Below, piece by piece: positions 5,371 to 38,400 of a DNA stretch of 64,000 bases. The notes under the pieces were generated by a model. That model had not been told where the DNA came from and made no database searches. It saw only the letters and a list, made by a program, of their open reading frames with translations. Origin of the DNA: Macrostomum lignano (taxonomy: Eukaryota); NCBI GenBank assembly GCA_002269645.1, contig NIVC01000261.1:1-64000 (forward strand), read 5' to 3'. The position numbers and the translations under genes are program-made. Numbering within the stretch: position 1 is the first letter of the stretch; every line of letters starts with the position of its first letter.

Positions 5371-5444
5371 AAGCCAGACGGCACCTGCTATCTGGCCACT
5401 GCCGCTCAGTATTTGGCGCTGTGGAGACCCCTGGACTGCGTCAG
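5371..5444 (+). pseudogene. Family A exon-1 3' fragment
   Basis: AAGCCAGACGGCACCTGCTATCTGGCCACTGCCGCTCAG...CTGGACTGCGTCAG matches KRDGTCYLATAAQ..LWRPLDC. It has no upstream part. Confidence 0.8.
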
Positions 5445-6269: not shown

Positions 6270-6317
6270 TCTATCTATCTATCTATTTATCTCTATCTAT
6301 CTATCTATCTATTTATC

Positions 6318-6376
<59 letters not shown>

Positions 6377-6386
6377 CTATCTATCC

Positions 6387-6420
<34 letters not shown>

Positions 6421-6428
6421 GTATCTAA
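6270..6428. repeat. (TATC)n microsatellite, ~160 bp
   Basis: Direct reading. The paralogous tract at 19996-21262 is about 8x longer. Confidence 0.95.
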
Positions 6429-6965
6429 GTATGCTTAGGTCCATATTAAATCTTTACTGAAAATGTTCGAATTTAAATTAATGCGAAAAAAATTTACGTT
6501 TTTGACTAAAAAAATTAGACGAATTGAAAATTTGTAGATTTTTCTTTTTTTCTTTTTTAAACCCCTTAAAGCCGATTTTTAATATCTTAATATCAATTGA
6601 TATTATAAAACCAGGTAATTATGCAGCCAGGACGTTCCGTCTCAAGGCAGAATGTCCGAACAAATTTTCTGTTGCTACCGAAGTTGAATTTTATCATCTG
6701 AAGCGAAAATCTTAAATAATTCTGTTTGGATTCCCAAAAATTATAGTTATGGCTCTAGGGAAGAGCTTTAGTTAGGGTTAGGGAGATGCCAGGGCTCGTG
6801 GGGCAGTTGCTGAGATGCTAATGCCAATAAATAAATCGATTCGATGAGAGCTAGCCTAGATGTGGCAAGGCTGAACTGCTAATGCAGTGACATAGGTTCA
6901 AATTTTGAGTGCAATGTTTCTATTTAAAGCTTTTATAATGTGACGAAAACTCCAGGAAAGAAAAA

Positions 6966-7700
6966 GCATAAAAGAAGCGCCACGTCGAACATAAAAGAAG
7001 TGCCACGTCGAACATAAAAGAAGCGCCACGTCGAACATAAAAGAAGTGTCACGTCGAACATAAAAGAAGCGCCACGTCGAACATAAAAGAAGTGCCACGT
7101 CGAACATAAAAGAAGTGTCACGTCGAACATAAAAGAAGCGTCACGTCGAACATAAAAGACGCGTCACGTCGAACATAAAAGACGCGTCACGTCGAACATA
7201 AAAGAAGCGCCACGTCGAACATAAAAGACGCGTCACGTCGAACATAAAAGACGCGTCACGTCGAACATAAAAGACGCGTCACGTCGAACATAAAAGAAGC
7301 GCCACGTCGAACATAAAAGAAGCGTCACGTCGAACATAAAAGAAGCGTCACGTCGAACATAAAAGAAGCGTCACGTCGAACATAAAAGAAGCGCCACGTC
7401 GAACATAAAAGAAGCGTCACGTCGAACATAAAAGAAGCGTCACGTCGAACATAAAAGAAGCGCCACGTCGAACATAAAAGACGCGTCACGTCGAACATAA
7501 AAGAAGCGTCACGTCGAACATAAAAGAAGCGCCACGTCGAACATAAAAGACGCGTCACGTCGAACATAAAAGAAGTGTCACGTCGAACATAAAAGAAGCG
7601 TCACGTCGAACATAAAAGAAGCGCCACGTCGAACATAAAAGACGCGTCACGTCGAACATAAAAGAAGCGTCACGTCAAATCTAAAAGAAGCGTCACCTCA
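6966..7700. repeat. 23-bp minisatellite (CACGTCGAACATAAAAGAAGCGT), ~32 copies
   Basis: A period of 23 was read directly. It explains the repetitive minus-strand ORFs at 6898-7567. Confidence 0.95.
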
Positions 7701-8277
7701 AACATCAAAGAAACGCCATACCAATGCTCACTCGGGAGATGCTGAGATGCTAGTGAGTGACTTAACGATGCGAAGCTTTTAGCAGGTAAAACTTGTTCAC
7801 CCAACACATTTCTTCCTTCTTTGCAGTTAAATCCCAGAACGGAGACCAAGAAAGCTATGATAGTATACTAAATGGATGTGTGAACAATGTTTGAAGTTTT
7901 AAAGCATTTTTGTCAAAGATGAAGTAAAAATCTTTTAAATATAAACTCTGAGTAAATAGAGGCAGCAATGTCTTTGATCTCAGGAGAAAGCTCCGAAACA
8001 AAGGAACTCAAGCAAAGAAGCCCGCCCCCAGACTTATCGACTACAATGAAGCGCATGAGAGCCAAGAAGACTTGCTCTCTACGATTGGCTGCGATCCCGC
8101 CTTTCACAGACTTTCTCCCCCTGTCCCAATGGAATTGCCATCCGACAGCAGCTCATAAAAAACCCGGTTGCAACCCGGTTGCCAAATCACTGCAGAAGAA
8201 TTTATAAAGTGTATCATCCTACAATTAGAAACACAAGAAATTGAAAGTTAAAATAATCTTACTAGCTCTGCAGTGCC

Positions 8278-9777
8278 ATGGCTGAGCAATGCTTGTCATT
8301 AAAACTTGCTTTTCTATTCGGTAAGTGACTAAAATGCAGCTCCCACATTACTCGTATTTAAGACTGCCTAAATTGAAGCTTTTTACTGCACTCTGTTCTA
8401 TACTGACTTCATTGCCCAAACGCAGTTTGCTGCTCTCTCGTGCTTCGAGTACAAGGCGACAGTTCGCGGACCTATTCTGTGTGCTCAGAGCAGCAGCTTC
8501 ACATGCTGGAAGCCGTTCTGAACGCCTACAACAACTTCACGACAACAACCAAGGCCACTACTGCAATTGACTGTCTAGCAAAGTGCCAGAGGGTGAGCTG
8601 CAGCGCTGCCGTCTCGGTGGAGAGCAATGCCACGTGCGAGATGGTCGCCATAACAACCGCCAAGCTGTCAATCTCAGCAAATCAGGTGCAGCAAGTCATC
8701 GGATCTCAGGTCGGTGCGAAGGTGTGGAAGGCGGACGACAGCGACTGGCCTCCGCCTGCAATGCAGCCTCGGAGTGAGTCATCAATGCATTGTCTCAGTG
8801 TTGAGTGGTAACCATTATTTGGCACAGACAGAAATTGCATTCACTGCAGTTTTGTAACACGCTGACGCTGCTCCATTGCAGACAGCAGCACAGGCAGAAA
8901 CGGCTCAATCCAAAGCGTCCTCATCAACACGACCGGCTGCTACCTGATCAAAGCTGCCGGCGCCAGAGGTGGCGGAAACTTACTGACGAACACATCCGGA
9001 GGCCAGGGAGCCCAGGTGAGCGCCAGAGTCAACCTGACGGCCGGCACCCAGCTGAGCATCGTTGTGGGCCAGATGGGCGGCTCGACGTCGTTGGATATCG
9101 AAGGAGGCGGCGGAGGCGGCGGCAGCTTCGTGTACCGGACGGTCGACCGGCTGCTGCTGCTGGCTGCTGGCGGAGGCGGCGGAGCTTCCAGCATTAAAAA
9201 TGGTGAGCTCAGTAGCTGCAGTTACTAGAAATTGTAAACTATGATAAGCAAAAACCACTCGAATAAGCAGTTTGGCTGATTTCACTGCAGGACAACAGGG
9301 AGAGACTGGAATAAACGGTTCCAACAGCCTGGGTAGCCACGCCCACAACGGATTCGGCGGAACCAACGGTCAGCCGGGCTCCAACAGCCCGCTGACACCC
9401 CAAGCAATAGCAACCATGGCGGCTGCGGCGCCGGCTGGCTCGGCAGGGCCGTCAGCCCAAGGCGGAGCTCCTCGGACGGAGAGAGAGGCGGCAGTCTGGC
9501 CGACGGCTGGGTCGGCGGCAGCGCCGGAAACGGCAGCGTCTGCGACGGAGGCTTCGGGGGAGGCGGCGGAGGCGGCAGCAGGACCAGCTCAGTGAGAGGC
9601 GCCGCTGGAGCCGGCGGTGGCTTCAGCGGCGGCGGAGCCGGACTGGGCTACGGCCACTGCGGCGGCGGCGGTGGCTCCTTCTGCAGGGGCGGCTGCGTGT
9701 TCGGCGGCACCTGGACCGGCGACCAGGGCTTCGTGTCCGTGCTTCTGGAGTCGGCCGCCTGCGACTCGGGCACCTGA
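8278..9777 (+). CDS. Family B copy B1: secreted PAN-like + ALK/LTK-like glycine-rich domain protein, with a 1-nt frameshift in exon 4
   Basis: Exons are 8278-8320, 8426-8773, 8882-9202 and 9291-9777, all GT-AG and phase 1. Exons 1-3 have the same lengths as in intact B3. One C is missing in the C-run at ~9388-9390 relative to B2/B3, so this is either a pseudogene or a homopolymer error. Confidence 0.75.
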
Positions 9778-11686
9778 TGCCGCTGCAACCGCTTGTTGAA
9801 GTGGGGTTTGGCCAGTAATATTTTAACTCTGACGGTCACTGTTTAGGATATTCACAACCCTTAATCTGATTAGAGCGCTCTTCTATATGTAATCAATTTA
9901 TACATTATGCTGTTAAACCAATGAATCAGTTTCAATACTACTCACCAACTTCTCATCACTAGTAGATTATGCGCATTTTAAAGTGCATAGCTTGAAACCC
10001 AAGCGATTTCAAGGCGAATCGTTGCGACTTTCACTCAAGATTTGTTAGATTTCTGATCAGCTTCGCTTTCATGCTTAAAAACCATTTTGCTGTTTTCTTC
10101 CTGAAATCACGTCAAACTGAACTGTTATTTAACTGATTATTGAATCTTTAACTGCTACTGATTTTGCACTCAGACAACTCAAAAGGTTTTCAATTCCGGC
10201 TAATTACGAACTAATAAATACTGAAAGCACTCGGATGTCCCATGCAAGCCGCTCGTCTTTTTTTCCTACCAGAGGATATCTGGAGGTTTTTTTGGACGAG
10301 CGGAATAAATCTGTGTGCTCAGCTGTCTTTCAGTGCCTGCTTCTGGCTTCTAAACAAAAAGCTTTATGAATATCAACCTTCTCTAACTATAAAAATAAAA
10401 ACTGTGTGTGTGTGCAATTGAAGAGTTTAAGAGTGGTGATCAGTCACTCAAAAACCCCCACTTCTAGACACTGGGTACCCTAGGTACCCTAGTGCCTAGG
10501 TATAGGTAATGTCAAATAGCTCTTACTGCAGCGGAATCTTTAGTGGCTTGTAGACGTCTTGGTTTAGTTTAGGTGACTCGTTACCCCCGGGAGTCCTCAA
10601 CTTTTATCTGGGGGTTGACCAAAAACGAGAGCGAATCAGAACTTCTTGACGGTCCTCGAGCTCGGAATTAACAATAGAATGTGCGCCTTAATTAACAATC
10701 GAACTCTCTAAGTTTCTGTGACAGGTCCTCCTGAAGGGCGTCTTCTTCGTTGCGTCCGAAACGTAATGGATAACTCAATTAAATCAATAAATCCTGTAGG
10801 AATGTATCCTAGGAAACAAGGAGGCCTTTCTCAAATGTGTCGACAATAAACGGCTCTCCAGAACGGTGCTGTGCACTTTTAAACTTTGTCTGCTTTTTGT
10901 CAGCGAGACAGCCACCCCAATCTCCGCCTCTCTCTCCCCTTATCTGGCATGGCCAGGTGTGGAATATTGGGCTTTCAAAATTGACTAAAAATTCGGCTTC
11001 CATAAGTTTGCTCTACGTTAAGTGATTGACTTCAAACTTGACAAAATTCTTAATTGACTCATTCTGTGTCTAAATATAAAGTCTCGACTCTGTAACTTAA
11101 TCAAAACAGAAACAGTAAAATGTGAAGTTTTTCTGCTTTTTCTGGTGTTAGGCCGCTCACCCATACATTCCCGCTCCCGCTCACCAAGGGTCAGGCGATA
11201 GGGCTGAATGTACATAGCAATGAACAGTGTTTTGGATGACTTTATTTATAGCCTTCTCTGCACCTTCGTGGAGAGGCTACGTTTAGCCATGACAGTTTAG
11301 TGACAAATTCTAACCCAGGCAGCAAACTCTGCAGCAGTTCATCAGTGGATGGCAACTCAAGGCAATGCAGCATCATGGTTATTGTAAAACTAAAATCGAA
11401 ACATTTATGAAAAAGCGATTACAATACAAACCGACTAAGTTAGGTACATCATCGAAATTTTAACACCAAGTTTCACCTAAAGGTACTTTAAAATTAAATA
11501 GTCTATAAAGAAATGTGCATTTCCTTGATTGTCAGACTGCTGCAGACTGCAGTGGAGCTGGTAGTACACAAATTCCTATCGGGCTGCAAATTGGCCAGAA
11601 AGATGACGTGTCCAAAGCAGTCAGCAAGCGGCTAACGGAATGAAACAACCATGAGAGTACTACGTCCCAAAAACTGGCTATCGGAG

Positions 11687-12346: not shown

Positions 12347-13506
12347 CTTTAGACAGACATTGCCCGACATTCTGCGCGGCACCCCAGCCGACGAGATCAA
12401 TGCTTCACTCAAACCTTAATTTAACACGAATGTACTCCATTTTATGTTTCCTCTATCTTAAGTATTAGCAAGTTTTTGTTTGAGTATGACTTCAGATTTA
12501 AGAATGCATTTAAAATAGTTCCGGGTATTTGAATTCTGCGGGTTCAAAATCCATGTTTTAGAACATTGCGGATTCAAAATAGCTTATTTTATAGCTATTT
12601 ATTAGTTTGTAAATTTATTACAGAACGTTCGCTTTTGTGAAATATGAAATCATACTACTGTCATAAGCATGAAAACTTCGCAGCGCTTATCTCGAATTCA
12701 TACAAGCCATGTTTCTTCCAATAGAATAAAGTAAATCCAATATAAATTTTTGTATTCATAAATTTTTGGTTGTTTGTCAATATCCTCATTTCAAATTTAC
12801 TTTGGAGAACCTGGTCTGGATATGTCAGTTGACTGCACCGATGAAGCGCTATTTGAAAAAGTTGTGCAAATTTCGTTTAGAGCCATTTGATCCCAGTCCA
12901 AAACCTAGGATAGGCTCCATTATTTGAGCGAATTTCAGATCCGGTTGTGAAACTCCAACAAAGAATCTACATTCAGCAGCTGCTCTGTTTGTAAAACCTG
13001 AGAGTTTGCACAGCGCGTTGAGCTTTTAGTGATCGCTGCAAAAAGGAGTATCATTCTTTATACTGGCATTGATTCATCTCAGCTTTCTGACATTTTGCAT
13101 ATTTCCTGTTTTTTGACTAAGTTGATGTCTTCATTAGCTACACTGCAGATTCGTTGCGCCCCTAGTTCAATTCCTGTTGCTAAATCGCAGTTGTCAGTTA
13201 GGTGCGGTTTGTCTACACGTAGGAGAATATGGCAGGCTAGGAACAACGGTTAAAGTTGCAGTTCACACACACAGGTAGACCAGCTGCAACCGTTTTGCAC
13301 CGGCAGGCATTGGCTCCAATAATTTTAAGGCAATGCAATCTTCTGATTGGCATCTCAGAGGCTGAGAAGCTAATTGGCTCAGAAACGTATTATGAGTATA
13401 TACTTCGTGCAGCACAGAAATGAAAATACACCAACACGTCCCAGCTCTAAAAAGCAAGTCTGAGTACTAAAAAATTATTTTCTTAGGAAAGCAAGCCATA
13501 ATAGCC

Positions 13507-14171
13507 ATGTTTTCACTCCTAGAAGCTGCCTGCTGCCTGCTCAGCCTGCTGTCCGTTGCGTCCGGCGTCTGCGTCCGCTTCCGCGTCGTCTCCGGTTGCC
13601 CCGGAAACGTGACCGGCCTGTCGCAGGTCAGCGGAGTCCGAGACCCTCGCGCCTGCTCGGTGGAGTGCGCAGTGCGACCCAACTGCACCGCCGTGTTCAA
13701 GCGAGACCGCACTTGCTATCTGGCCACTGCCGCTCAGCATGAGGCGCTGTGGAGACCCCTGGACTGCAGCAGCGAGGTCAGTCGGCTCTCTGTCATTTCT
13801 TTTTGTCTTGTGTTAATATTTCTTATTATGAATTGTATTAGCCAAACATTGCAACAGAAATTGACGTATGCAATCGTTTCCTTTAGGTTGTAGATGAGAG
13901 GAGATTGGTCACTGATACAACCGACAGTATTGAGTCTGTTGCAGCCTCCAACAGTGTCACAGCTCCAACTAGCCATGAAATTGCAGTTTCCACTACCAGC
14001 CAGCTTCCCTGCTCTCTAGCCAACCAGCCTTGCACATTCGATAACTCCTATCTGGCCGATTGCACCAGTGAAACAAAATTTCTGCAATGCGACGGTAGTA
14101 AATATGTGCAAAAGACTTGTGGGTCTGGAACAAAGTGGTCAGCGGCTCTGAAAACGTGCGTTAACATTTAA
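13507..14171 (+). CDS. Family A copy A3, intact 184-aa secreted PAN-like + short Ser/Thr linker + CBM14/peritrophin-A-like protein
   Basis: Exons are 13507-13776 and 13887-14171 (phase 0, GT-AG). The N-terminus is hydrophobic (ACCLLSLLSVASG) and the PAN-type core is CSVECAVRPNCTAVFKRDRTCYL. The C-terminus DC..FLQC-x9-CGSGTKW-...C has C-x9-C-x12-C spacing like chitin-binding type-2 domains. Confidence 0.85.
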
Positions 14172-15524
14172 ATCTGAATCTAACGGTCAGCTGTGAAGTC
14201 AACTATTGCTATCACTTTGTGGTCATCGTAGCACTCAGTAATACTCGTATTTGGTTTTCTTACTATGAGGTACTTCTGGCTAGCTTTTCTGAGAACTGCT
14301 AACACAAGCTGAAAAAATGTAAATGTGGGATTGACGTGGTTAGGTTGAAGATAATATCGGGATGAAGTATGCGAAAGTTAGAAAAGCTGCTGGCAACTGC
14401 AGATGGCTTTGAATTGTGAGCGGCACAAGGGGCTTTCTAAGGGCGGGCTTGAGTGCAGGAAAAGAAATACAAAAGGCGGGCACAGACAAGACGCGTGAGC
14501 GAGATCCCGAGTGAATTTCATAGGCTTTCCTATTCTAAAAAAGTACTGGGGAAAGATGACACGCCTGTCACCAAATCCAAAGGCGGAACGATACAGCGAA
14601 AAGAATTCATGAGGATAAGAAAGAATTGATGTGCATCAGACACACAGGAGCTGGTAATTCATGCAGCTGCGTCGAAGAAAATGTGCATCGATGCGTTTCT
14701 TTTAGCTCTTAACTGTTTTCCCGAAATTTCATGTCTCAACTCTAGAATTCTATCTTTATCCAGAATTTTGTGAAAAACTCGTCCTTACTTTTAAATTCGC
14801 TTTGTTATAAAGTCAAAGACCTCTTATCTGCGTATGTTTTAAACGCATTGGTCTTAATTTACTAAGATATTTTATCTAAGATATTTTATCTTCAAATCAT
14901 TTTACTTCTTTAATATCCTTGTTATAGTCAATAGTTTCTGTGCTTCTTTAGAGCACCCTATTCCTCCTTGTCTTGTCCTTGTACAATGGTCCTTGGGTAA
15001 AAGCGAAATGACACAGCGAAACAAATTCGAGGAGACAAGAGGGCAATTCATGTGTAGCAGTTATTGAAAATAATATTTATTCAACGCTTTTTCACTAAAT
15101 TTCCCCCCTCTTCTCAGTAGAATTAGCAGGAGTCAAAAATGAAATGAGTAAAACTTGTTTTTCCCTTTTACGTTTGCAATTTGTTATAAAGTGAAGGACC
15201 TCTTTGTCTGCAGGTAGAAAATTTATTTGAAGGTTAAATATCGTTTCAATTGTTTTGCAATAGAAATTTTTGCAGATAATTAATCTTTTTAGGAATTTAA
15301 TTGTCACTTCTTGGCAAAAAAGGAAACTTGGGAAGATTATGAACTTTATTAATATGCTCCGTTTTGTTAAACTTGTTTTTAAGCTCTTCGATGTTAATTA
15401 TAAAAACAAAATGCATATTTTAGTCGAATATTTTAACCTATAACGTCTTTATTATATTACTAATTAGTTTCTTTTTCCTTTTTGTCGTTTTGGGTCGTCG
15501 TGAGACAACAGTTGTACACCATAG

Positions 15525-16021
15525 GACAACCGGGAGAGAGTGGGATAAACGGTTCCGACAGCCTGGGTGGCCACACCCTCTTCACGCGATTCGGCGGCAC
15601 CAACGGTCAGCCGGGCTCTAACAGCCCCGCTAGCACCCCAAGCCATAGCAACCACGGCGGCTGCGGCGCCGGCTGGCTCGGCAGGGCCGTCAGCCCCAGA
15701 CGGAGCTCCTCGGACGGAGAGAGAGGCGGCAGTCTAGCCGACGGCTGGGTCGGCGGCAGCGCCGGAAATGGCAGCGTCTGCAACGGAGGCTTCGGGGGAG
15801 GCGGCGGAGGCGGCAGCAGGACCAGCTCAGTGAGAGGCACCGCGGGAGGCGGCGGCGGCTTCAGCGGTGGCGGAGCCGGACTGGGCTTCGGTCACATCGG
15901 CGGCGGCGGCTCCTTCTGCAGGGACGGCTGCGTGTTCGGCGGCACCTGGACCGGCGACCAGGGCTTCGTGTCGGTCCTGCTGGAGTCGGCCTCAGCCGCG
16001 TGTGACTCATCAGACACCTGA
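15525..16021 (+). CDS. Family B copy B2: orphan intact terminal exon (glycine-rich domain C-half)
   Basis: The AG is at 15523-15524 and the exon is an open phase-1 frame to TGA at 16021. It is homologous to exon 4 of B1/B3. No exons 1-3 are found immediately upstream. Confidence 0.6.
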
Positions 16022-18806: not shown

Positions 18807-19134
18807 AGGCACAGACAGTGTTCATGCCTGCCGATTAGAAAGTCAGGATTGCTGTACACTCTGTGTGAGTATGTTTATGAGTATTGGCGCGCTTATGTGC
18901 TCAGAAGTCAGAGGAATGGGTAACTTTAAGCGAAAATACAACAGAGAGATCTGGCGCGCACGAACACTGTGCAGACAGCTACAATGGGCTAAAATCAACA
19001 TTTTATTATGGTTTTTGCGGCACGAGTTTGCGTATAACTAAACATTCTCGAAACGTCTTGTTTCCTTGTTTCCTTCGTTAGGAAATGAGATCGCAAAAAC
19101 AAAGTCACTGAATCAGAATGCCTGATTTGCTCTA

Positions 19135-19208
19135 AAGCGAGACGGCACTTGGTATCTGGCCAATGCCGCTCAGTATTTGGCGCTGTGGAGACCACTGGAC
19201 TGCGTCAG
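19135..19208 (+). pseudogene. Family A exon-1 3' fragment (paralogue of 5371-5444)
   Basis: It is the same fragment with TGC->TGG in the CYL motif. Confidence 0.8.
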
Positions 19209-19995
19209 TATGTTCTCCGTGATGTTTTCACGAGAAAATCTTTGATATTAAGTTTGTCAGTTTAATTAATATTGGTAGGTTATCTGCTCATATTAACAGT
19301 GGCACATTTCTAGGTAATGCTGGAGAGGCGGGTCTTCCGTACCTACAAAAAGTACTTTACATGTATGTGCTTTTGTGGAATTCCATTTTTATTCTTTAAT
19401 CATCGAACGGACCAGTTAGAAAAAGTAGCATAATGGCCAGCTTAAGTGCATAAATAATTCACTTCAAGTTCGACACATTTAATTCAAATGGCGACCAACC
19501 AACTCAGAGTTACTAAAAGACCAAGTCAGGTGCATCAAATAGTCATTTCAAGTAGCAGAATCTGGGCTTCTGAGTATTTCTCTTCCGCCTAGGAATAACG
19601 AACACGGAGGTGCCAGTCTGTCATCGTTTAATTTGCACGTGACTCGGATATATTTTGGCAGACAAACTGAATTTTATGCTTTCAGAGCTTTCTCAAATTT
19701 AAGCAAGTCATTTTACTCATCGAAAAGAGAATATCCAGTATTCTTCTTGGTATTCTCTCTCCAGCTGCAGCCCGACGTTTTTCAATTCCGACACTAAATT
19801 TACTTTGTAAAACCTGATCTGCACACTGCAGTTGACCACGCAGTTTTTTCTGCAAATGTAAAGAGAAAATTTTGCTAATTTTTCTGTCAGTTTTTTCCTG
19901 AAAACCCAGGTTGAAGTTCATTATTTGACCAAAATTCAGATCCGGTTCTGAAACTCAAATCACAAATCTCCGTTTAGCAGCAACTTTACTTTTCA

Positions 19996-21262
<1,267 letters not shown>

Positions 21263-22582
21263 GAGTGAAATTGTAAGCCATAAGTACAAGTCCGTATAAA
21301 ATCTACACTTAGAATGTCCGAATTCAAATCGGCGCCCAAAAGTTTACGTTTTTATGCTTTGAAAATATTTAAAGCTTAAAGTTTACGAATTGAACAATTG
21401 TAGACCAAAAAAGACCATATTTCTTATATTTGATATCAATCAATAAAAATCCAGGACAATCGGTCTCAAGGCAGATTTTGCTGTTCCTACTGAATTGAAT
21501 TTCATCATTTGAAGTGAGCATGTCAGAAGATTCTAACTGGATTCCCAAAAAATCCTGGCTCATGGGCAGTTGCTGAGATTCCAATGCCAATCAATAGATC
21601 GATTCGATGAGAGCTCGCGTACATGTGGCCAGACTGAACTGCTAATGCAGCGACCTGGGTTCGAATTTTGAGTGCAAATGTTTTCATTTAAAGCTTTTAT
21701 GATGTGACGAAATCTCAAGAATAGAAGAAACATAACAGAAGTGACATATAATGCATAAAAGAAACGTCTAACAACCATGAAAGAATATAGAATTGTCTCT
21801 TATTTAGGGCCATCTAACTCTGCTGCCCACGCTTGCATCATTTTAGCATCTATATTATTGCCTGAAGATGCCGATTGTTCGGCGAAACATGTCGCGCAAA
21901 GATGAATAAAATTGTAATTAAGTAATTTTAAAGGAAAAAGCGAATGTTCGTTTTTGCTTCGTTCTCCTGGCTTTTATCAAACCATAAAAAAGTCACTTCA
22001 GACATCAAAGAAACGCCATACCAATGCTCACTCGGGAGATGCTGAGATGCTATAGTGATGATGATTTGACGATGCAAAGCTTTTAGCAGGTAAAACTTGT
22101 TTTACCAAACACATTTCCTATTTCTTTGAATGTTAAATCCCAGAACGGAGACTAAGAAAGCTATGATAGTAAACTAAATGGATGTGTGAACACTGTTTGA
22201 AGTTTTAAAGCATTTTTGTCAAAGATGAAGTAAAAATCTTTTAAATATAAACTCTGAGTAAATAGAGGCAGCAATGTCTTTGATCTCAGGAGAAAGCTCC
22301 GAAACAAAGGAACTCAAGCAAAGAAGCCCGCCCCCAGACTTATCGACTACAATGAAGCGCATGAGAGCCAAGAAGACTTGCTCTCTACGATTGGCTGCGA
22401 TCCCGCCTTTCACAGACTTTCTCCCCTGTCCCAATGGAATTGCCATCCGACAGCAGCTCATAAAAAACCCGGTCGCAACCCGGTTGCCAAATCACTGCTG
22501 AAGAACTTCTAAAGTGTATCGTCCTACAATTAGAATCACAAGAAATTGAAAGCTAAAATAACCTTACTAGCTCTGCAGTGCC

Positions 22583-24064
22583 ATGGCTGAGCAATGCTTG
22601 TCATTAAAACTTGCTTTTCTATTCGGTAAGTGACTAAAATGCAGCTCCCAAATTACTCGTATTTAAGACTGCCTAGATTAATCTTTTTGATTGTTTTATA
22701 CTGACTTCATTGCCCCAACGCAGTTTTCTGCTCTCTCGTGCTTCGAGTACAAGGCGACAGTTCGCGGACCTATTCTGTGTGCTCAGAGCAGCAGCTTCAC
22801 ATGCTGGAAGCCGTTCTCAACGCCTACAACAACGTCACGACAACAACCAAGGCCACTGATGTAATCGACTGTCTAGCAAAGTGCCAGAGGGTGAGCTGCA
22901 GCGCTGCCGTCTCTGTGGAGAGCAATGCCATGTGCGAGATGGTCGGCATAACAACCGCCAAGCTGTCAATCTCAGCAAATCAGGTGCAGCGAGTCATCGG
23001 ATCTCAGGTCGGTGCAAAGGTGTGGAAGGCGGACGACAGCGACTGGCCTTCGCCTGCAGTGCAGCTTCGGAGTGAGTCATCAATGCATTGTTGTGGATTG
23101 GCTAGCAAAGACCGAAATTGCACTCACTCCAGTTTTGTAACTCGCTGACGCCGCTCCATTGCAGACAGCAGCACAGGTAGAAACGGCTCAATCCAAAGCG
23201 TCCTCATCAACACGACCGGCTGCTACCTGATCAAAGCTGCCGGTGCCAGAGGTGGCGACAACTTACTGAACAACACATCCGGAGGCCAGGGAGCCCAGGT
23301 GAGCGCCAGAGTCAACCTGACGGCCGGCACCCAGCTGAGCATCATTGTGGGCCAGATGGGTGGCTCGACGTCTTTGGATTACGAAGGAGGCGGCGGAGGC
23401 GGTGGCAGCTTCGTGTACCGGACGGTCGACCAGCTGCTGCTGCTGGCTGCCGGCGGAGGCGGCGGAGCTTCCAGCATTAAAAATGGTGAGCTCAGTAGCT
23501 GCAGTTGCTAGAAATTGTAAAATATGATAAGCAAAAACCACTCGGATAAGCAGTTTGGCTGATTTCACTGCAGGAAAACCAGGAGAGACTGGGATAAACG
23601 GTTCCGACAGCCTGGGTGGCTACGCCTCCTTCACGGGATTCGGCGGCACCAACGGTCAGCCGGGCTACAACAATCCCGCTGACACCCCAAGCAATAGCAA
23701 CCACGGCGGCTGCGGCGCCGGCTGGCTCGGCAGGGCCGTCAGCCCAAGGCGGAGCTCTTCGGACGGAGAGAGAGGCGGCAGTCTGTCCGACGGCTGGGTC
23801 GGCGGCAGCGCCGGAAACGGCAGCGTCTGCGACGGAGGCTTCGGGGGAGGCGGCGGAGGCGGCAGCAGGACCAGCTCACTGAAAGGCGCCCCTGGAGCTG
23901 GCGGAGGCTTCAGCGGCGGCGGTGCCGGACTGGGCTACGGCCACAGCGGCGGCGGCGGTGGCTCCTTCTGCAGGGGCGGCTGCGTGTTCGGCGGCACCTG
24001 GACCGGCGACCAGGGCTTCGTGTCCGTGCTTCTGGAGTCGGCCGCCTGCGACTCGGGCACCTGA
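22583..24064 (+). CDS. Family B copy B3, intact 400-aa secreted PAN-like + ALK/LTK-like glycine-rich domain protein
   Basis: Exons are 22583-22625, 22724-23071, 23165-23485 and 23574-24064 (1203 nt, open). The N-terminus is signal-like (MAEQCLSLKLAFLFVFCSLVL) and the PAN-like motif is DCLAKCQRVSCSAAVSVESNAMCEM. The GRD motifs are GSIQSVLINTTGCYLIKAAGARGG, GQGAQVSARVNLTAGTQLSIIVGQMG, GGGGGSFV, LLAAGGGGG and GAGGGFSGG. There is no TM segment. Confidence 0.88.
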
Positions 24065-24744
24065 TGCCACTGCAACCGCTTGTTGAAGTGGGGCTTGGCC
24101 AGTAATATTTTAACTCTGACGGTCACTGTTTAGGATATTCACAACCCTTAATCTGATTAGAGCGCTCTTCTATATGTAATCAGTTTATACATTATGCTGT
24201 TGAACCAATTAATCAGTTTCAATACCTTAATTCGCAGAACTTTGAATTCAAAAATATTCGCAAAATACTACTGCTTGGGATGAGAACATTGTGACTAGTG
24301 CTGGACTTCAGAGTCGAGTTACATGTAAATTTAACTACTCACCAACATCTCATCACTAGTAGTGCATGCGCATTTTAAAGTGCATAGCTTGAAACCCAAG
24401 CGATGTCAAGGCGAATCGTTGCGACTTTCACTCAAGATTTGTTAGAATTCTAATCAGCTTCGCTTACATGCTTAGAAAACCATTTTGCTGTTTTCTTCCT
24501 GAAATCACGTCAAACTGAACTGTTATTTAACTGATTCTTGAATCTTTAACTGCTTCTGACTTTGCACTCAGACAACTCTAAAGGTTTTCAATTCCGGCTA
24601 ATTACGAACTAATAAATACTGAAAGCACTCGGATGTCCCATGCAAGCCGCTCGTCTTTTTTTCCTACCAGAGGATTTCTGGAGGTTTTTTTGGACGAGCG
24701 GAATAAATCTGTGTGCTCAGCTGTCTTCCAGTGCCTGCTTTTGG

Positions 24745-25691
24745 CCTGTTGCAGGTTAACGGAGTTCGAGACCCTCGCGCCTGCTCTGTGGAGTGCGCAG
24801 TGCGACCCAACTGCACCGCCGTGTTCAAGCGATACGGCACTTGCTTTCTGGCCAGGGCCGCTCCGTATGAGGCGCTGTGGAGACCCCTGCACTGCGTCAG
24901 CGAGGTCAGTTGGCTCTCTGTCATTCGATCTCTCTGTCTTGTTTATATATTGCTTATTATGAATTGTATTAACTATAGGCATTGCAACAGAAATTTACGT
25001 ATGCAATCGCTTCTTTCTTGTTGTAGATGAAAGGACATTGGCCACTGATACAACCGACAGTATTGAGTCTGTTGCAGCCTCCAACAGTGCCACTGCTCCA
25101 ACTACCAGTGCCACTGTGCCACTGCTCCAACTACCAGTGCCACTGTGCCACTGCTCCAACTACCAGTGCCACTGTGCCACTGCTCCAACTACCAGTGCCA
25201 CTGTGCCACTGCTCCAACTACCAGAGTCACTGCTCCAACTACCAGTGCCACTGCTCCAACTACCAGAGTCACTGCTCCAACTACCAGTGCCACTGCTCCA
25301 ACTACCAGTGCCACTGCTCCAACTACCAGTGCCACTGCTCCAACTACCAGTGCCACTGCTCCAACTACCAACTACCAGAGTCACTGCTCCAACTACCAGT
25401 GCCACTGCTCCAACTGCCAGTGCCACTGCTCCAACTACCAGTGCCACAGCTCCAACTGCCAGTGCCACTGCTCCAACTACCAGTGCCACTGCTCCAACTA
25501 CCAGTGCCACTGCTCCAACCAGCACCATCGGCCCCATTTGCGCCCTAGCTGAACAGTCCTGCACCACTGATTTCATCTACATGCAAGCCTGTGACAGTGA
25601 CCTGCATTTTCTTCAGTGCACAAACGGAAAATACGTTCGCATGCAATGCGCTGATGGAACAAGTTGGTCGGCTGGAACGTGCACTGGATGA
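24745..25691 (+). pseudogene. Family A copy A4: 5'-truncated, in-frame acceptor lost, long Thr-rich repeat, intact C-terminal Cys domain
   Basis: Homology starts abruptly at 24745, so there is no signal peptide. The donor is at 24905. The A3-type acceptor (CTTTAG|GTTGTAG) reads CTTTCTTGTTGTAG here, leaving only an out-of-frame AG at 25025-25026. The exon-2 frame is open to 25691 (...FLQCTNGKYVRMQCADGTSWSAGTCTG). Confidence 0.7.
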
Positions 25692-26818: not shown

Positions 26819-29046
26819 CATGTTTTTACAGCCTCAACCACTGCCACTGCTTAAGCTAACACCTAATTAAAGTTTAAATCTTTTACTTTGACTTTGTGGC
26901 AATCGTGGAGCTTAGTAATATGTACGTGTACTTTTTATGGGGGCTGTAAGTTTTCTATTATATGAATAACTCCTAACAAGAGCAGCAAACTTGAATGCAG
27001 CATAGACAATGCCATGCATTGTTGAAGTTTAGGTTGTGACGAATAGCTATTGGTATGAAGTACATTTATGGGAAAGTTAGAAAGGCTGCTTGCAACTGCC
27101 AATGGATTAGAATTGTGATAGGCAGAACTAGTTCTTTATAAGGGCGGGCTTGAATACAGGAAAGGAATTAGCAAAAGGCGGGCTCAAACAATAGGCGTGA
27201 GCGTGATCCCAAGGGAATCACATAAGTTTTCCTATCCTAAAAAAATACTGGGAAAGATGACACGCCTGTCACCAAATCCAAAGGCGGAACGATACAGCGA
27301 AAAGAATTCATGAGAATACGAAAACTTTGAGATGCATCAGACTCACATGAGCTGGTAATTCCCGCCTGAGCTGCATTGAAGAAAATGTGTATCGATGCGT
27401 TTCAATTTTTGCTCTCAACTGTTTTCCCGTAATTTCTGACTCTCATAACTCTAGAATTCCCATCGAATCCAGAATTTTGCGAAGAAAAACTCGTCTTTAC
27501 CTTTAAATTCGCAGATCAATTTTTTCTTTAGAGATTTGTACTTTATTTTCTGAAATTATGTCGATGTTACTAAGCTGTTATTTAACTGATTTTTGAATCT
27601 TTCACTGCTACTGACCTTGCACTTAGACAACCCAAACATTTCTCAATTCCCAATAATTAATAAATCATGACGGCATTCGGCTGTCCGAAGCCGCTCGTCT
27701 TTTTTTTCCTGCCAGAGGAGGGAGAAATCCACTTCTCACAAAACAGCTCCACATTGTGAGGCAGCTTCTCTTTGGCCTAAAAATATTTCTAAGAAAGGAA
27801 CTGCTGTGGTCAGAGCAGCTCACCGGTAAATGCGTGTAGCTCTCGCGCCACGAAGCCGCCATGAAATCTGGTTGCTTTACGTCCCAGGCGAGTCTACAAC
27901 ATTGTTCGATGCAGTCGAGGACTGTACATGGACGCGAGAAGCTGGCGGTGCGCTCAAGGGTCGCTTGACTGTCTGAGTGATCTCCTTCCCCATACTTCTC
28001 GACTGTACAGCTCCATGGCACATGAGCTGATGGCAAGAAATTCGTTATGGAAGACGGTGTAGAGAAGGTTCCGGCGTGTTGGGAAGATTTGGGACTCGTC
28101 AGTGCAGAATCAGAGGATTTCACGGGGTTTTCAGTTGTCCCTTGCTTTGTGACGCTCAGACGATAAGTCGCGAGAAGTCCAAGTCTGATTCCGACAGTTT
28201 GTATTTAATTCAGTGAGGCGAAATTTTCACTTTAGGCCACAGACAGTACGAGTTAAAGCTCGGATATAGGAAGAAACCAGCCTGTCCGAATCATTGATCT
28301 ATGGTCTGAATTGAATAAATACTCTCGGAATCGATTTGACTTCTCACATTCTGAGCCACAGTTGTCCTTGATCCTAATCCAGTTGTTTCATCTAAGTTAT
28401 CAAGTCGTCCTTGATTAGGATATAATACTCGTAGCCCACTGTCGGAATTGAGTATTAATTAAAAAAACAGTTTGAATTGAATTGAAAGCAAAGGGCCGTT
28501 TTAGAACGCACGCAGTTGTCGGAACTGAATGCACATTGCACCTTGTGCTACCATAAAGAATTACATGTATATGAAAATACTTAAACTTTGACTGCACAGT
28601 TAACAAAATAGAATGGAAACTAAAGGTGTAGTATGCTATACTATACATACTATGTAAATCTGCAATGTAAACCTGCCATTAATTCGGGGCTTAGTCCGCC
28701 ACCATGCAGTTACCAAGCAAGCTAAGATGTTCGTAGATGTAAGTTTCTGCTGGCGCTGTTGCTGAGTCTCCGCTTTCGACTTACATGTATTCACGAATTA
28801 ATGGGTTATAGTGTGTCTACATGTGTAGAATAGGATAGGCTAGAGCCTGTTGCCTTCAAGTTTCAAGGCAATGCAATGTTTTGATTGGCATTGAGAAGCT
28901 GATTCGCTCAGAACTTGCTGTTAAGCACTTGTTTTGAGCATATAACTCGTTTAGCACGGAAACGAAACTCCAACAAACCTCAACTGTCAAAAAAAGCCTG
29001 AGTAACAAAACAAATTATTTTCTTCTGAAAACCAACCCTAAAAGCA

Positions 29047-29647
29047 ATGTTTATAAAAACTGCCTGCTGCCTGCTCAGCCTGCTGTCCATCGCATCCGGT
29101 GTCTGCGTCCGCTTCCGCGTCGTCTCCGGTTGCCCCGGAAACGTGACCGACCTGTCGCAGGTCAACGGAGTCCGAGACCCTCGCGCCTGCTCGGTGGAGT
29201 GCGCAGTGCGACCCAACTGCACCGCCGTGTTCAAGCGAGACGGCACTTGCTATCTGGCCACTGCCGCTCAGTATGAGGCGCTGTGGAGACCCCTGGACTG
29301 CCGCAGCGAGGTCAGTCGGTGCTCAATACACCAGTAAAATTAAACTTATCCATAAGTGCCCTTCATTGTTGTTAAGAACCTTTTCGTTGATTGTTGCACC
29401 CACTCAGGTGGTGGAAGGAAGACTGGTCAACACGACTTCACCTCCGAACTCTGGTGCTGACATGAGCACCACCAGAAGCTCCGTCTGCTTCACAGATGGC
29501 CAGGCGTGCACCATCGACTTCATGAGAGACTGCAGCAGCGATGTGCACTACCTGCGCTGCAATCATGGAGCCTACGTTCAGATGCCGTGCTCAGCTGGCA
29601 CATCCTATTCCGCTGGCACATCCTATTCCGCTGGCACCTGTCCATGA
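29047..29647 (+). CDS. Family A copy A5, intact 167-aa secreted PAN-like + CBM14-like protein
   Basis: Exons are 29047-29310 and 29408-29647 (phase 0, GT-AG). It has a signal peptide, PAN core, short linker and Cys domain with a tandemly duplicated AGTSYS. Confidence 0.85.
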
Positions 29648-30844
29648 GGATGCCCACCACTGAAGACAATCTAACCAAACCAAACCGATTTGAAGCTATC
29701 AGATGTTCAGAGCTTTTGAAGATAAGATATGCCTGCTTGAAGGAACTCGCACTTTAATAAAGGACACGTCCAAAATTAACTATACTTATAATTAGTAATA
29801 TTTGGTACAGCATGTTAATGCGCTTGCTTTGTTATTTCAAATAGATTTTGTTTGTTATGCTAAGTTTGAAAGCGAACAATCAAATTTTATAAAGCCTGCA
29901 CAGAATACTCAGACTTGTCCCTTTACAAGTATTCATGTGGCCTAATGATTTGTTGTTTGGATTGTGGATATTTATCGGGATAAATTTTTGGTTAGAAAGG
30001 TGCTTGCAAATCCGAATTGTTAGGAACTGTGACTGGGGAAACTGGCGTTTTTTATGAGGGGGCTTGAGTAAAGGAAATAATCGCTAAGGCGGGCTGAAGA
30101 GGCGTGAGTTGTGATCCCTTTGTGTGTTTTATGTTCTCCTATCACAAAAAGAAGGTAAGAAAGACAAGTTTGTCACCAATTCCAAAGGCTGAGCCCTGAG
30201 AGAGAGCCCTGAGCTGCATCCAAGATGGTAGTTTATGCAGCAGCATTGAACAAAATTTTTATCGAGACGTTTTTCACCTCTCAAGGCTTTTTTCACGAAA
30301 TTTTCACAGAAATTTCCCGTAGTAGAATTTTTATTGTGAAAAACTCAAATAAAACACGTTTTCCCTATAAATTTGCCTTGTTAAAGTCAGGGGCACCTCT
30401 TGTTTGCAGGTGTGGCCAGGAAATTTATTTTTAAAGGATCCATTCTTGAGATGAAAATTTATTCACTTTAAAATATTTTTTGCAGAATAGGCGGGTTCAT
30501 TTCCTTATAGCAGGTGTTGGTTTGCCTCATTAGAGTTTTTGTACCTCCAGCGATGTTAAGTAGTATACACGGATAACAATAAAGTGTAAATTTAGCAAAC
30601 AATAAAATTCAGTATGCAAACTATTTAGCTTACTTAACTACTATTAGTAAATGATACGAGCGAAGCTGCCTATTTCAAATACAGCTCAACTGAATGCTCT
30701 ACATGTGATTTGATTGGCTGGATTAATCCTGCCGATACTACACTGCAGATAGAAAAAGTAAAACTATAAAAGCTTAGAAAATTCCCTTTAACTTTATTAC
30801 TCATATGCTCAGTTTGAAGAGCTCTCTGAACTCTCTCTCCGATA

Positions 30845-31186
30845 ATGCTCATTTATAAAGCCGCTGTGTCCTTGCTGGTTGCTGGGTCAGCCTGCTGCCT
30901 CCTGAGCCTCCTGTCCGAAGCAGCCGGTCTCACCGTCCAGCTGACCATCGTAGCCGGCTGTCCGGACAACCTGACCCTGTTTAGCCGGGTGTCCGGGGTT
31001 CGAGACCCGCGCGCCTGCTCAGTGGAGTGCGCGATACGGCCGAACTGTAGCGCCGTTTACAAACAGAACAGCGTCTGCTACTTCGCAGTTGGGGAGCAGT
31101 ACCCCCTGTTGTGGACTGGCGGCGGCTGCAGCAGCGAAGTGAGCTAGTTGGTTAATCAGTCAGTTAGTTTGTTTGTTAGTTAGTTG

Positions 31187-31220
<34 letters not shown>

Positions 31221-31421
31221 CAGTTAATCAGTTAGTCAGTTAGTTAGTCAGTTAGTTAGTTAGTTAGTCAGTTAGTTAGTCAGTTAGTTAGTTAGTTAGT
31301 TAATTAGTTAGTCAGTTAGTTAGTTAGTTAGTTAGTTAGTCAGTTAGTTAGTTAGTCAGTTAGTCAGTCAGTTAGTTAGTTAGTTAGTTAGTCAGTTAGT
31401 TAGTTAGTTAGTCAGTTAGTC

Positions 31422-31456
<35 letters not shown>

Positions 31457-31585
31457 CAGTTAGTCAGTTAGTTAGTCAGTTAGTTAGTTAGTTAGTTAGT
31501 TAGTCAGTTAGTTAGTTAGTCAGTTAGTTAGTTAGTCAGTTAGTTAGTTAGTTAGTCAGTTAGTTAGTTAGTTAGTCAGTTAGTC

Positions 31586-31620
<35 letters not shown>

Positions 31621-31709
31621 CAGTTAGTTAGTTAGTTAGTCAGTTAGTCAGTTAGTTAGTTAGTTAGTTAGTCAGTTAGTCAGTTAGTTAGTTAGTTAGT
31701 CAGTTAGTC

Positions 31710-31744
<35 letters not shown>

Positions 31745-31773
31745 CAGTTAGTTAGTTAGTTAGTCAGTTAGTC

Positions 31774-31804
<31 letters not shown>

Positions 31805-31905
31805 CAGTTAGTCAGTTAGTTAGTTAGTTAGTTAGTTAGTCAGTTAAACAGTTAGTCAGTTAGTTAGTCAGTTAGTTAGTTAGTTAGTCAGTCAGTTAGT
31901 CAGTC

Positions 31906-31964
<59 letters not shown>

Positions 31965-32021
31965 CAGTTAGTTAGTTAGTTAGTTAGTTAGTCAGTTAGT
32001 CAGTTAGTTAGTTAGTTAGTC

Positions 32022-32056
<35 letters not shown>

Positions 32057-32065
32057 CAGTTAGTC

Positions 32066-32096
<31 letters not shown>

Positions 32097-32554
32097 CAGT
32101 TAAACAGTTAGTCAGTTAGTTAGTCAGTTAGTTAGTTAGTTAGTTAGTCAGTTAGTCAGTTAGTTAGTTAGTTAGTTAGTTAGTCAGTTAGTTAGTTAGT
32201 TAGTTAGTTAGTCAGTCAGTCAGTTAGTTAGTTAGTTAGTCAGTTAGTTAGTTATTCGGTGAGTTAGATAGTTAGTTAGTGACTAACTGTGACCAATGTA
32301 TATCAGTACATTTTGAGACTGTAACTCAGGAACTGCCCAAGTACAGTCACGTGCATGCCCACTGCATCCCGCAGGCTGTGCGAGGAAGGCTGACCTGCTC
32401 GTTTCCCAACGACAACTGCACCGGCATGCCAGCAGCCCGCAAGCACTGCACAAAGAATCTTCACTACCTGACCTGTCTGGGAACAAACGTCTATGCCGAG
32501 ATGCCCTGCGCTAACGGCACATCGCGCAACGCCAACACCTGCCCGCCTCCGTGA
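30845..32554 (+). CDS. Family A copy A6, divergent intact ~157-aa PAN-like + CBM14-like protein without spacer
   Basis: Exon 1 is 30845-31138 (GT at 31139). Exon 2 is 32375-32554 (CCGCAG|GCTGTG; AVRGRL aligns with VVEGRL of A5). An alternative in-frame acceptor at 32329 is possible. Confidence 0.8.
31147..32282. repeat. (GTTA/GTCA)n microsatellite filling the A6 intron
   Basis: Direct reading, ~1.1 kb. Confidence 0.97.
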
Positions 32555-35479: not shown

Positions 35480-38400
35480 TCACAGAGGTGAGCTCCTGTG
35501 CTGCGGATGCTTGGCACTGCCAGATCCGCCCTCCTGCAGGTCAAGGAACTCGGACATCAGCGGCGGTACAAACCTCGGGTTGGACATTGTGGCCAAGTCG
35601 GAGAAGTCTTTCTCGAGGCCGCGCAGCTCCGCTAGCTGGGTGAGCAGCTGTGGATAGACTTTGCGAGCGTGGGACACGGTGAACCGCGTGCGCAACAGGC
35701 GTTCGAGCAGCATGCAGTACTTCACCTGCGACTCTTCCACCTGGAGGGCAACATGGGCGATTGGAGGTTGGTGAGTTCGGTGAGATCAAAAGAGATTTAG
35801 GGGGTATTGATGTGTCAGTGAGATCAAAGAGATTCAGGGGGTATTGGTGTGTCAGTGAGATCAAAGAGATTCAGGGGGTATTGATGTGTCGGTGAGATCA
35901 AAGAGATTCAGGGGGTATTGGTGTGTCAGTGAGATCAAAGAGATTCAGGGGGTATTGGTGTGTCGGTGAGATCAAAGAGATTCAGGGGGTATTGATGTGT
36001 CAGTGAGATCAAAGAGATTCAGGGGGTATTGATGTGTCGGTGATATCAAAGAGATTCAGGGGGTATTGATGTGTCAGTGAGATCAAAGAGATTCAGGGGG
36101 TATTGATGTGTCAGTGAGATCAAAGAGATTCAGGGGGTATTGATGTGTCGGTGATATCAAAGAGATTCAGGGGGTATTGATGTGTCGGTGAGATCAAAGA
36201 GATTCAGGGGGTATTGGTGTGTCGGTGAGATCAAAGAGATTCAGGGGGTATTGATGTGTCGGTGAGATCAAAGAGATTCAGGGGTAACTATATGACGGTA
36301 AGATCAAAGAGATTCAGATGATAATGTGTCGGTGATATCAAAGGATCTGATTTAAATTGTAAAATTGTTCAGAAGCCGTACAATTGAAAAATATTCAAGC
36401 AGAAGCTGCGCGTATGCAAGAAGTGCAATCGTATAATTATTCAACATGAAATTTCCTGAGACAGGCTGCAGCAAGTTCATGCCCAAAGCCAGTTGCTCTT
36501 GAAAAAACAGCTGTACCCAGCCCTCAGCTTACAGGGGAGTTTGCGATTCCACCAGCGAAAAAAACCGAACAAAGGAAAAGCAGAGATCCCCGTGAGAAAA
36601 GCGAGACAACTCTGCAGCTGTTTCCTGCAACCCGACTGCAAACAAAGTTGAAGCAAACTCAACTGCCTGCATTGTGAATTGCTTTTCAAAAATGTTGACA
36701 TCAGATTTCCTACTGTATTTCAGCCCGTTATACGGTAGATCGCTTGGAATTGGAATTCCTAGAATGCCGCTTCAGAGAAAATTCCAGAAATTATATCAAA
36801 AGAAGCTAATTAGAATGGCGCCAGATAGAAACTTCTTAGAATGGCGCCAAAAGCACATTTTTAGAATGGCGCTAAATGGACATTTCTAAGAATGGCGCCA
36901 AATAAACATCTTTTAAAAATATCACCACATAGACATTTCTTAGAAGAACACAAAACAGAAATTTCTAAGAATGGCGCTAAATAGACATTTCTTAGAACGG
37001 CGCCGAATGAACATTTCTTAAAATGGTGCCAAGCAGACATTTCTTAGAATGGCACCTAAGGATATTTCTTAGAATGGCGCCAAATAGAATTTTTTTAAAA
37101 TGGCGCAAAGCAGAAATTTCAACGAATGGCACCAAAAAGACATTTCAAAAAGAAGTGGCACCAAACATTCTTTTCTTAGAATCGCCCCGATTAGAAAGTT
37201 CTCGGAAGTGGCGAAAAAAAGATTCAGAATGGCACTAGGCAAGCATTTCTTAAAAAAGGACCGACAATAAAAAAATAATCCCTCAGCCGAAACAGACACT
37301 CACCAGATCCCTTCCCTCAGGCGACAAGCCGGCCCGGTCTGGGCTGAACAGGCAGCAGACGAGCAGCAGCACCAGGGTGTGATGATCGCACTGCAGATTG
37401 CTGCGCAGAGTCCGGGCCAATTGAAAGAATGCGTGCCCGGCATTGGGCCCGGCCGCTCTCAGGAAATCCTGGCCCTGCATAGAGTCCGACTCGGCACTGG
37501 CCGTGTCCGTCTCGTCAAGGAATCTGGCATGGTCCGGATCGAAGCTGATGACGCCGCGCAGTAGAATGAGCTCGAGGGCGCCACCCTTCAACAGACAGAC
37601 CTTGTCCGGCTGGCTGAGCTGCCGGAACTCGTCCAGCTTCTTGCTCAGATCGATCACTCGCATCACGGACAGCTCGGCAAAGTTGATCAGGTCGTCCACG
37701 TTGGCCGCACGCTGGCCGTGGCGCTCGGCGACTCGAACCTCGGCCGACTGGCGATAGTACTCGGCCAACTGGGTCAGCTCTTGGACGTCCGATTCGGACA
37801 TGATCTCGCGGTCGGCCAGCTCTGATGGCGTGAGCTCCTTCGGGAGCAGGCCCAGAGTCTCCAGAGTGCGCAGCAGCCTGCGGTTTGGGGGGAGTCACCG
37901 ATTGAGACCAGAGTGACTGGGGAGTGACTGGAGTGACCAATTGAGACCAGAGTGACTGGGGAGTAACTGGAGTGACCGATTGAGACCAGAGTGACTGGGG
38001 GAGTGACCGGAGTGACCAATTGAGACCAGAGTGACTGGGGAGTAACTGGAGTGACCGATTGAGACCAGAGTGACTGGGTGAGTGAGCGGAGTGACTGATT
38101 GAGACCAGAGTGGCTGGGTGAGTGAGCGGAGTGACTGATTGAGACCAGAGTGACTGGGTGAGTGAGCGGAGTGACCAGTTGAGACCAGAGTGACTGGGTG
38201 AGTGAGCGGAGTGACCAGTTGAGACCAGAGTGACTGGGTGAGTGACCGGAGGGACCAGTTGAGACCAGAGTGACTGGGTGAGTGACCGGAGTGACCAGTT
38301 GAGACCAGAGTGACTCGGTGAGTGAGCGGAGTGACCAGTTGAGACCAGAGTGACTGGGTGAGTGAGCGGAGTGACCAGTTGAGACCAGAGTGACTGGGTG

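Follow-up and report, generated by a model that had tools for sequence, protein, structure and literature searches.

Descriptions of the glycine-rich TG (TNF-like plus glycine-rich) module usually treat it solely as the part with which ALK and LTK bind ligand. A gene in the flatworm Macrostomum lignano encodes such a module directly behind a cysteine-containing N-terminal domain (the N-domain), and raises the question of what the module does there: whether the product is a piece of a receptor, a soluble trap for a receptor ligand, a structural material, a decaying duplicate, or an extracellular protein with a role of its own. The gene lies in a 64,000-nucleotide stretch of contig NIVC01000261.1 (positions 1 to 64,000), which is the window referred to throughout. 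The initial annotation had described a soluble, spliced protein with an ALK/LTK-type glycine-rich domain (GRD) and no transmembrane or kinase part, and had implied that such a protein is rare. The analysis below supports most of that description, qualifies the identity of the N-domain, and places the protein in a family that is large.

The gene, designated copy B, is intact and has four exons, all of whose borders are GT..AG (Table 1). The joined exons span 1203 nt, coding for 400 aa. Both the exon 2/3 and the exon 3/4 junction recur residue for residue in the database protein P0003 (100% identical over the matched part), which confirms these two junctions of the 400-aa product that had been proposed. 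Exon 1 is predicted from its splice sites and from its identity at 43 of 43 positions to the first exon of a neighbouring copy (copy A), whereas the adjoining intron 1 is identical at 91 of 105 positions. An AG shortly 5′ of the ATG could be a trans-splice acceptor.

Table 1. Features of the copy B gene, its relatives and its neighbourhood in the window.
Feature	Position	Strand	Description
Copy B gene	22583-24064	+	Intact, four exons
Possible trans-splice acceptor	22577-22578		AG, 4 nt 5′ of the ATG
Copy B exon 1 (predicted)	22583-22625	+	ATG and first 14 codons, putative signal peptide n- and h-region; GTAAGT donor directly after
Copy B exon 2	22724-23071	+	Putative signal peptide end and probable PAN/Apple-like N-domain (residues ~26-130)
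Copy B exon 3	23165-23485	+	TG module start, NSSTGRNGSIQ...TGCYLIKAAGARGG; N-terminal TNF-like strands
Copy B exon 3 motifs	23165-23485	+	First glycine motifs, GGGGGSFV and LLAAGGGGG
Copy B exon 4	23574-24064	+	Glycine-rich part: GCGAGW, GGFGGGG, GAGGGFSGG, GGGGGSF
Copy B exon 4, 3′ end	to 24064	+	Last two TNF-like strands (GFVSVLLES), then TGA
Copy B stop codon	24062-24064	+	TGA
Candidate polyadenylation signal	24611-24616	+	First AATAAA 3′ of the stop
Copy A	8278-9777	+	Same four exons: 8278-8320, 8426-8773, 8882-9202, 9291-9777; CDS ~96% identical
Copy A exon 4 deletion	about 9388		1 bp
Copy C	15523-16021	+	Lone last exon, open frame, own AG acceptor; 80% protein identity
Segmental duplication	19081-24745 vs 5317-10347		~14.3 kb offset
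Duplicated stretch (example)	21977-24225 vs 7675-9938		93.8% identity
Cys-domain exon, five occurrences	616-1056, 13471-13890, 24707-25027, 29029-29334, 30830-31144	+	GVRDPRACSVECAVRPNCTAVFKR.GTC.LA
Gene 3′ of copy B (includes)	24963-25688	+	Thr/Ala/Pro-rich repeat, then Cys-rich end
21-bp repeat in that gene	25203-25519	+	Thr/Ala/Pro-rich
Nuclear hormone receptor gene exons	37286-40298	-	Two domains, below
zf-C4 DNA-binding domain	39819-40298	-	E 3.7e-10
Ligand-binding domain	37286-37894	-	E 2.3e-10
Micro-/minisatellite arrays	19996-21262, 44917-47095, 40309-41934, 6967-7712, 31138-32280, 37891-38966, 61474-62404		Include (ATCT)x317, 37-bp unit x59, 35-bp unit x47, 23-bp unit x32
Stop-free ORF	60072-61367	+	432 aa

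Sequence profiles and a predicted structure together confirm that the resemblance of the glycine-rich part to an ALK/LTK-type TG module is more than chance, as had been claimed. Six of the seven GRD motifs that had been listed match as written, and the first needs an extra residue (SIQ...I..TGCYLI.A.GARGG). Against the copy B protein itself, Pfam PF12810 (ALK_LTK_GRD) scores 18.3 bits (E 0.0025), below its gathering cut-off of 24.5; P0003, a fragment identical to copy B, carries a precomputed match to the same model, and relatives score 23.8-63.8 bits. Used as a single sequence, copy B matches LTK (7nx0) over 66 residues (query 132-197, LTK 38-103, E 0.0016). With a family profile built from 70 members, the PDB search reaches ALK at E 4.9e-11 over the whole TG region, the alignment running from the first TNF-like strands to ...GEVNIKHYLNC, which we take to be the last residues ahead of the start of the ALK EGF-like domain. 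The copy B protein presumably stops at the point from which ALK goes on with an EGF-like domain, a transmembrane helix and the kinase.

The fold was assessed with an AlphaFold model of P0001, an 87%-identical M. lignano paralogue (69 homologues), rather than of the exact copy B protein. This model has a pLDDT of 77.8 and a pTM of 0.67, with pLDDT >90 through most of the TG module, and shows β-strands at both ends of the module with a DSSP-blank, glycine-rich middle between them. When it was compared with the PDB by Foldseek, all 21 matches at E <= 0.001 were TG structures of ALK, LTK or C. elegans SCD-2 (E 5e-10 to 2e-6, target-normalised TM 0.42-0.61, RMSD 6-7 Å). The strands and the matches therefore support a TNF-like plus glycine-rich architecture, as the structure-prediction check suggested in the initial annotation had anticipated, at a moderate TM. 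Motif order and fold are shared with the TG supradomain of ALK, LTK and SCD-2 (PF12810; PDB 7n00, 7nx1, 7lir), at an identity of ~20-27%.

Whereas ALK and LTK have an EGF-like domain, a transmembrane helix and a kinase, the copy B protein has none of the three. Its N-terminus, MAEQCLSLK-LAFLFVFCSLVL-RVQG|D, is compatible in hydropathy and by the -3/-1 rule with a cleavable signal peptide, and cleavage is predicted after G25 (VQG|D), within the limits of an exon 1 that is itself predicted. The sole 19-residue Kyte-Doolittle window above 1.1 covers residues 1-28, and scanning with 19-residue windows gave no hydrophobic segment after residue 28 that could form a transmembrane helix. Nine N-x-S/T sequons follow the signal peptide region. 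Residues 131-400 make up the 270-residue module, which is 30% glycine, and the protein stops 8 residues past the last TNF-like strand without an EGF-like domain after the TG module. Pfam found no MAM, LDLa or EGF-like part anywhere in the protein, and a heparin-binding part is likewise lacking. Kinases were sought by motif regular expressions over all six frames of the 64 kb and by Pfam on ten neighbouring ORFs. No tyrosine or serine/threonine kinase catalytic loop (HRDLAARN-type), DFG, APE or P-loop was found in the six frames, and none of the ten ORFs gave a kinase match. Both the absence of a hydrophobic helix and the absence of a kinase part, as first described, thus hold.

The position of the stop codon agrees with this. 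In the 126 homologues retrieved, a median of 26 residues follows the last GGGGS motif, as compared with ~31 in the copy B protein, and coral homologues with an N-terminal signal peptide terminate at the same β-strand. The copy B stop is therefore the natural C-terminus of the family, and an in-frame stop occurs at the same position in copies A, B and C. One paralogue stands apart: of the homologues retrieved, only P0017 (618 aa) has a hydrophobic stretch C-terminal to the GRD (residues 552-595). This paralogue may be anchored in the membrane, or its gene model may be a chimera.

The N-domain had been called a PAN domain. A cysteine domain does lie directly ahead of the GRD, in copy B and in every M. 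lignano paralogue examined; however, PAN sequence models do not match it and the fold matches are not significant. In copy B it contains five cysteines, C34 and C64-x3-C68-x4-C73-x11-C85. Neither PAN_1, PAN_3 nor PAN_4 gave a Pfam match at E<=1, and the N-domain alignment, searched as a profile against the PDB, returned nothing at E<=10. A Pfam match of the isolated domain to AGK_C (E 0.052) was rejected as spurious. Aligned by hhalign, the flatworm N-domains and coral PAN domains have their cysteine cores in register, at a non-significant E of 0.11. The stand-alone model of the domain is of low confidence (pLDDT 63). In the Foldseek lists obtained with that model and with the full P0001 model, PAN-fold proteins prevail (HGF N domain, SML-2 lectin, plasminogen, leech antiplatelet protein (LAPP), MIC4 and a Colletotrichum oxidase), with best E values of 0.09-0.12 that are also non-significant; the stand-alone model had no match below E 0.1. 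The N-domain is similar in size to known PAN/Apple domains (HGF N, plasminogen PAp, Sarcocystis SML-2, Toxoplasma MIC4), although neither sequence nor profile comparison matches them significantly. Its nested C-x3-C...C...C core presumably corresponds to the hairpin-loop disulfide pattern of PAN domains, and UniRef names the 87-88%-identical paralogues 'Apple domain-containing'. We consider the N-domain a probable, rather than a proven, PAN/Apple-like domain.

Copy B is not alone in the window. The duplication that had been reported is real: a segmental duplication carries the GRD gene together with its flanks, giving the four-exon copy A, and the last exon is present once more as copy C. In copy A the frame is shifted by a 1-bp deletion in a G+C-rich stretch of exon 4, which makes this copy either a young pseudogene or the product of an assembly error; dN/dS between copies A and B is 0.48, which indicates mild constraint only. 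Nine paralogue queries detected no exons upstream of copy C, so this copy is probably left over from an incomplete duplication.

Several other features share the window. A different gene begins ~600 bp past the copy B stop and combines a Cys-domain with a Thr/Ala/Pro-rich repeat; its Cys-rich end has a weak match to CBM_14 (E 0.012). Exons for this type of Cys-domain, with the signature GVRDPRACSVECAVRPNCTAVFKR.GTC.LA, occur five times, one of them with a weak PAN_3 match (E 0.034). These exons resemble a family of genes for mucin-like secreted proteins that is scattered among the GRD copies. Further along are exons of a nuclear hormone receptor gene, with minisatellites in the introns between its two domains, and a long ORF without stops, normal in its amino-acid complexity, to which no Pfam model matches. 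Micro- and minisatellite arrays are unusually dense in the window, and account for the strong local swings in GC and skew of its composition profile.

The best database matches to the copy B protein are all from M. lignano. Nine UniRef entries are near-identical, most of them automatically named 'receptor protein-tyrosine kinase' and two 'Apple domain-containing'; the kinase name is also carried by the fragments identical to the copy B gene (A0A1I8GL89, A0A1I8J4T5 and others; the P0003 cluster). Apparently the name was transferred automatically from the GRD domain, and it misleads because the locus has no kinase. Beyond these entries, an exhaustive profile search recovered 5,909 cluster representatives at E <= 0.001, of which 1,927 were at E <= 1e-10. 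Many family members have 2,000-6,000 residues and several modules, and in the animal members sampled the GRD module is joined to EGF repeats or to a C-type lectin domain.

After the flatworm proteins, the next relatives are from stony corals (Pocillopora, Porites, Stylophora, Acropora) and share 44% identity with the flatworm module over 212 aa. These coral proteins combine a signal peptide, PAN_1 (E 1.2e-7), EGF repeats and a GRD; examples are Porites harrisoni ABFA07_017308 (P0052), Stylophora pistillata AWC38_SpisGene21703 (P0087) and a Pocillopora verrucosa 'putative lysozyme-like' protein (P0045). Like copy B, with its putative signal peptide and probable PAN/Apple-like N-domain, they have a signal peptide at the N-terminus and a PAN domain ahead of the GRD, and end right after the last TNF-like strand. 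Unlike copy B, they have a COLFI-like stretch and EGF repeats inserted, as well as a ~20-residue insert within the GRD, and their PAN domain passes Pfam whereas the flatworm N-domain does not.

The family extends to bacteria, where we found GRD modules at seven loci in metagenome-assembled genomes (MAGs). One of these, L003, in a Gammaproteobacteria MAG (CAYYDR010000002.1, 85-4818, + strand), is a 1577-aa ORF in which three ALK-type GRD modules follow one another in tandem, with Ser/Thr-rich Ig-like spacers between them; all three open with YNNSSTG.TGTIQTW, which is nearly the flatworm entry motif. The bacterial modules share with copy B the entry NSSTG.TGTIQ...TG.Y.I.A.GA.GG and the order of the glycine motifs, at 40% identity over 96 aa. 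L003 differs from copy B in its prokaryotic setting, in its three modules within a giant protein and in having no PAN-like domain. A bacterial origin was rejected for metagenome-derived ENA matches of ~300 aa, which are coral-like, exon-sized ORFs on Mb-scale eukaryotic contigs.

The size of the family and its coral and bacterial members thus make kinase-less GRD proteins common, and the implied rarity of the copy B protein is not upheld: the 5,909 representatives include PAN+GRD proteins of corals and multi-module proteins of bacteria. The copy B family consists of extracellular proteins, from bacteria to animals, that have the TG module and no kinase. The searchable literature holds nothing on the function of PF12810, of kinase-less GRD proteins or of the coral 'loricrin-like' proteins, nor on function for Macrostomum in combination with glycine-rich proteins or ALK. 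The one relevant passage there mentions the domain in three Drechmeria proteins.

Taken together, these observations make it fairly probable, in our judgement, that copy B encodes a secreted, N-glycosylated protein of two modules and ~375 mature residues that works in extracellular binding or bridging, and not a receptor fragment. The first module would be a small N-domain, knotted by disulfides around a PAN/Apple-like cysteine core; the second is a complete TG module, in which a TNF-like β-sandwich holds a glycine-rich insert, and is homologous to the ligand-binding ectodomain module of ALK and LTK. We propose that the protein would be secreted and glycosylated, that the N-domain would tether it to a glycan or protein in mucus, in matrix or on a surface, and that the rigid TG module would offer a second binding face. 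In this role the protein would serve as a soluble factor for recognition or bridging, lectin-like or adhesive, rather than as a signalling receptor or a cytokine trap. The bridging reading fits because of the partner domains seen in the family (PAN, EGF, C-type lectin), the tandem multi-copy organisation and the secreted, apparently mucin-like neighbours. By comparison with these domain partners, a lectin-like binder or adhesin would fit best among the roles that have been proposed.

Other explanations account for part of the evidence. The flat glycine-rich lattice might instead pack into the fibres or sheets of a secreted, self-assembling polyglycine material (such as eggshell, adhesive, rhabdite or mucus), with the N-domain as anchor. 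The 30% glycine of the TG part would suit such a material, as would the apparent secretion of the protein, a multi-copy, tandemly duplicated family and adjoining genes that look mucin-like. The glycine motifs, however, form part of a globular ALK-like fold predicted with high confidence instead of running as extended low-complexity repeats; cross-linking motifs are absent and nothing points to oligomerisation; and in the 2021 structures of ALK and LTK the TG modules are reportedly soluble monomers until ligand is bound. We therefore consider a structural role unlikely. It is quite improbable that copy B is a non-functional duplicate, decaying in a repeat-rich, recently duplicated genome and open in frame by chance. 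The frameshift in copy A, the lone exon of copy C, a dN/dS of only 0.48 and the abundant minisatellites of the region would agree with decay, but copy B retains its four exons and their splice sites together with an unbroken frame of 400 codons, exon 1 is perfectly kept between the copies while intron 1 is not, and nine near-identical protein entries exist in the database.

Two further alternatives start from the kinship with ALK. In one, which the initial annotation had raised, the protein would be a soluble decoy or modulator that captures a flatworm ALK ligand, as soluble receptor ectodomains do. The fold is indeed that of the ALK/LTK ligand-binding module, the GRD of C. elegans SCD-2 included, and the protein is apparently secreted and has no kinase. 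At the position aligned with the glutamate of ALK 'GEVNIK', however, the copy B family has a hydrophobic residue; this glutamate probably contacts the ligand, and the argument from it weighs little. Dozens of paralogues are poorly compatible with a dedicated decoy. The copy B module is also much closer to the secreted coral proteins and the bacterial modules, at the identities given above, than to LTK with its 66-residue match. Because of this, and because the ALKAL/AUG ligands are a vertebrate innovation to which Jeb and HEN-1 are unrelated (PMC7851593), an ALKAL decoy is very improbable. The other alternative, that the copy B exons encode the ectodomain of a genuine ALK-type receptor, with more distant exons for its transmembrane helix and kinase, is barely credible to us. 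It could draw on the UniRef name of the identical fragments and on the C-terminal hydrophobic stretch in the P0017 paralogue model. Against it stand the shared in-frame stop of copies A, B and C, at which homologues end too, 64 kb without a kinase motif, a different gene ~600 bp downstream, and a protein that lacks MAM, LDLa and EGF-like parts.

A secreted recognition or bridging protein remains the reading we prefer, and what the locus offers has to be seen within its family. The copy B protein is a well-defined addition to a large, uncharacterised family that shares the ligand-binding fold of ALK and LTK, and it is less novel than had been assumed; the locus reveals no new kind of system. 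It is instead a clean, intron-bearing example of the TG fold as a free, putatively secreted protein. There are many such free TG proteins across bacteria, corals and flatworms, with PAN, EGF or lectin domains as their usual partners, and the locus corrects the automatic 'receptor protein-tyrosine kinase' names in the databases. It also bears on the origin of the ALK ligand-binding module. We speculate, while holding it to be rather unlikely, that the secreted TG proteins of flatworms and corals either keep an ancestral, pre-receptor job, which would be soluble pattern recognition or matrix binding, or bind an invertebrate ligand and modulate ALK-like signalling outside the cell. If the ancestral job were the true one, the function would be inherited from or shared with bacterial surface proteins, and ALK would represent a module captured by a kinase. 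RNAi works in M. lignano, and the flatworm is a tractable animal in which to find the non-receptor function of the TG module.
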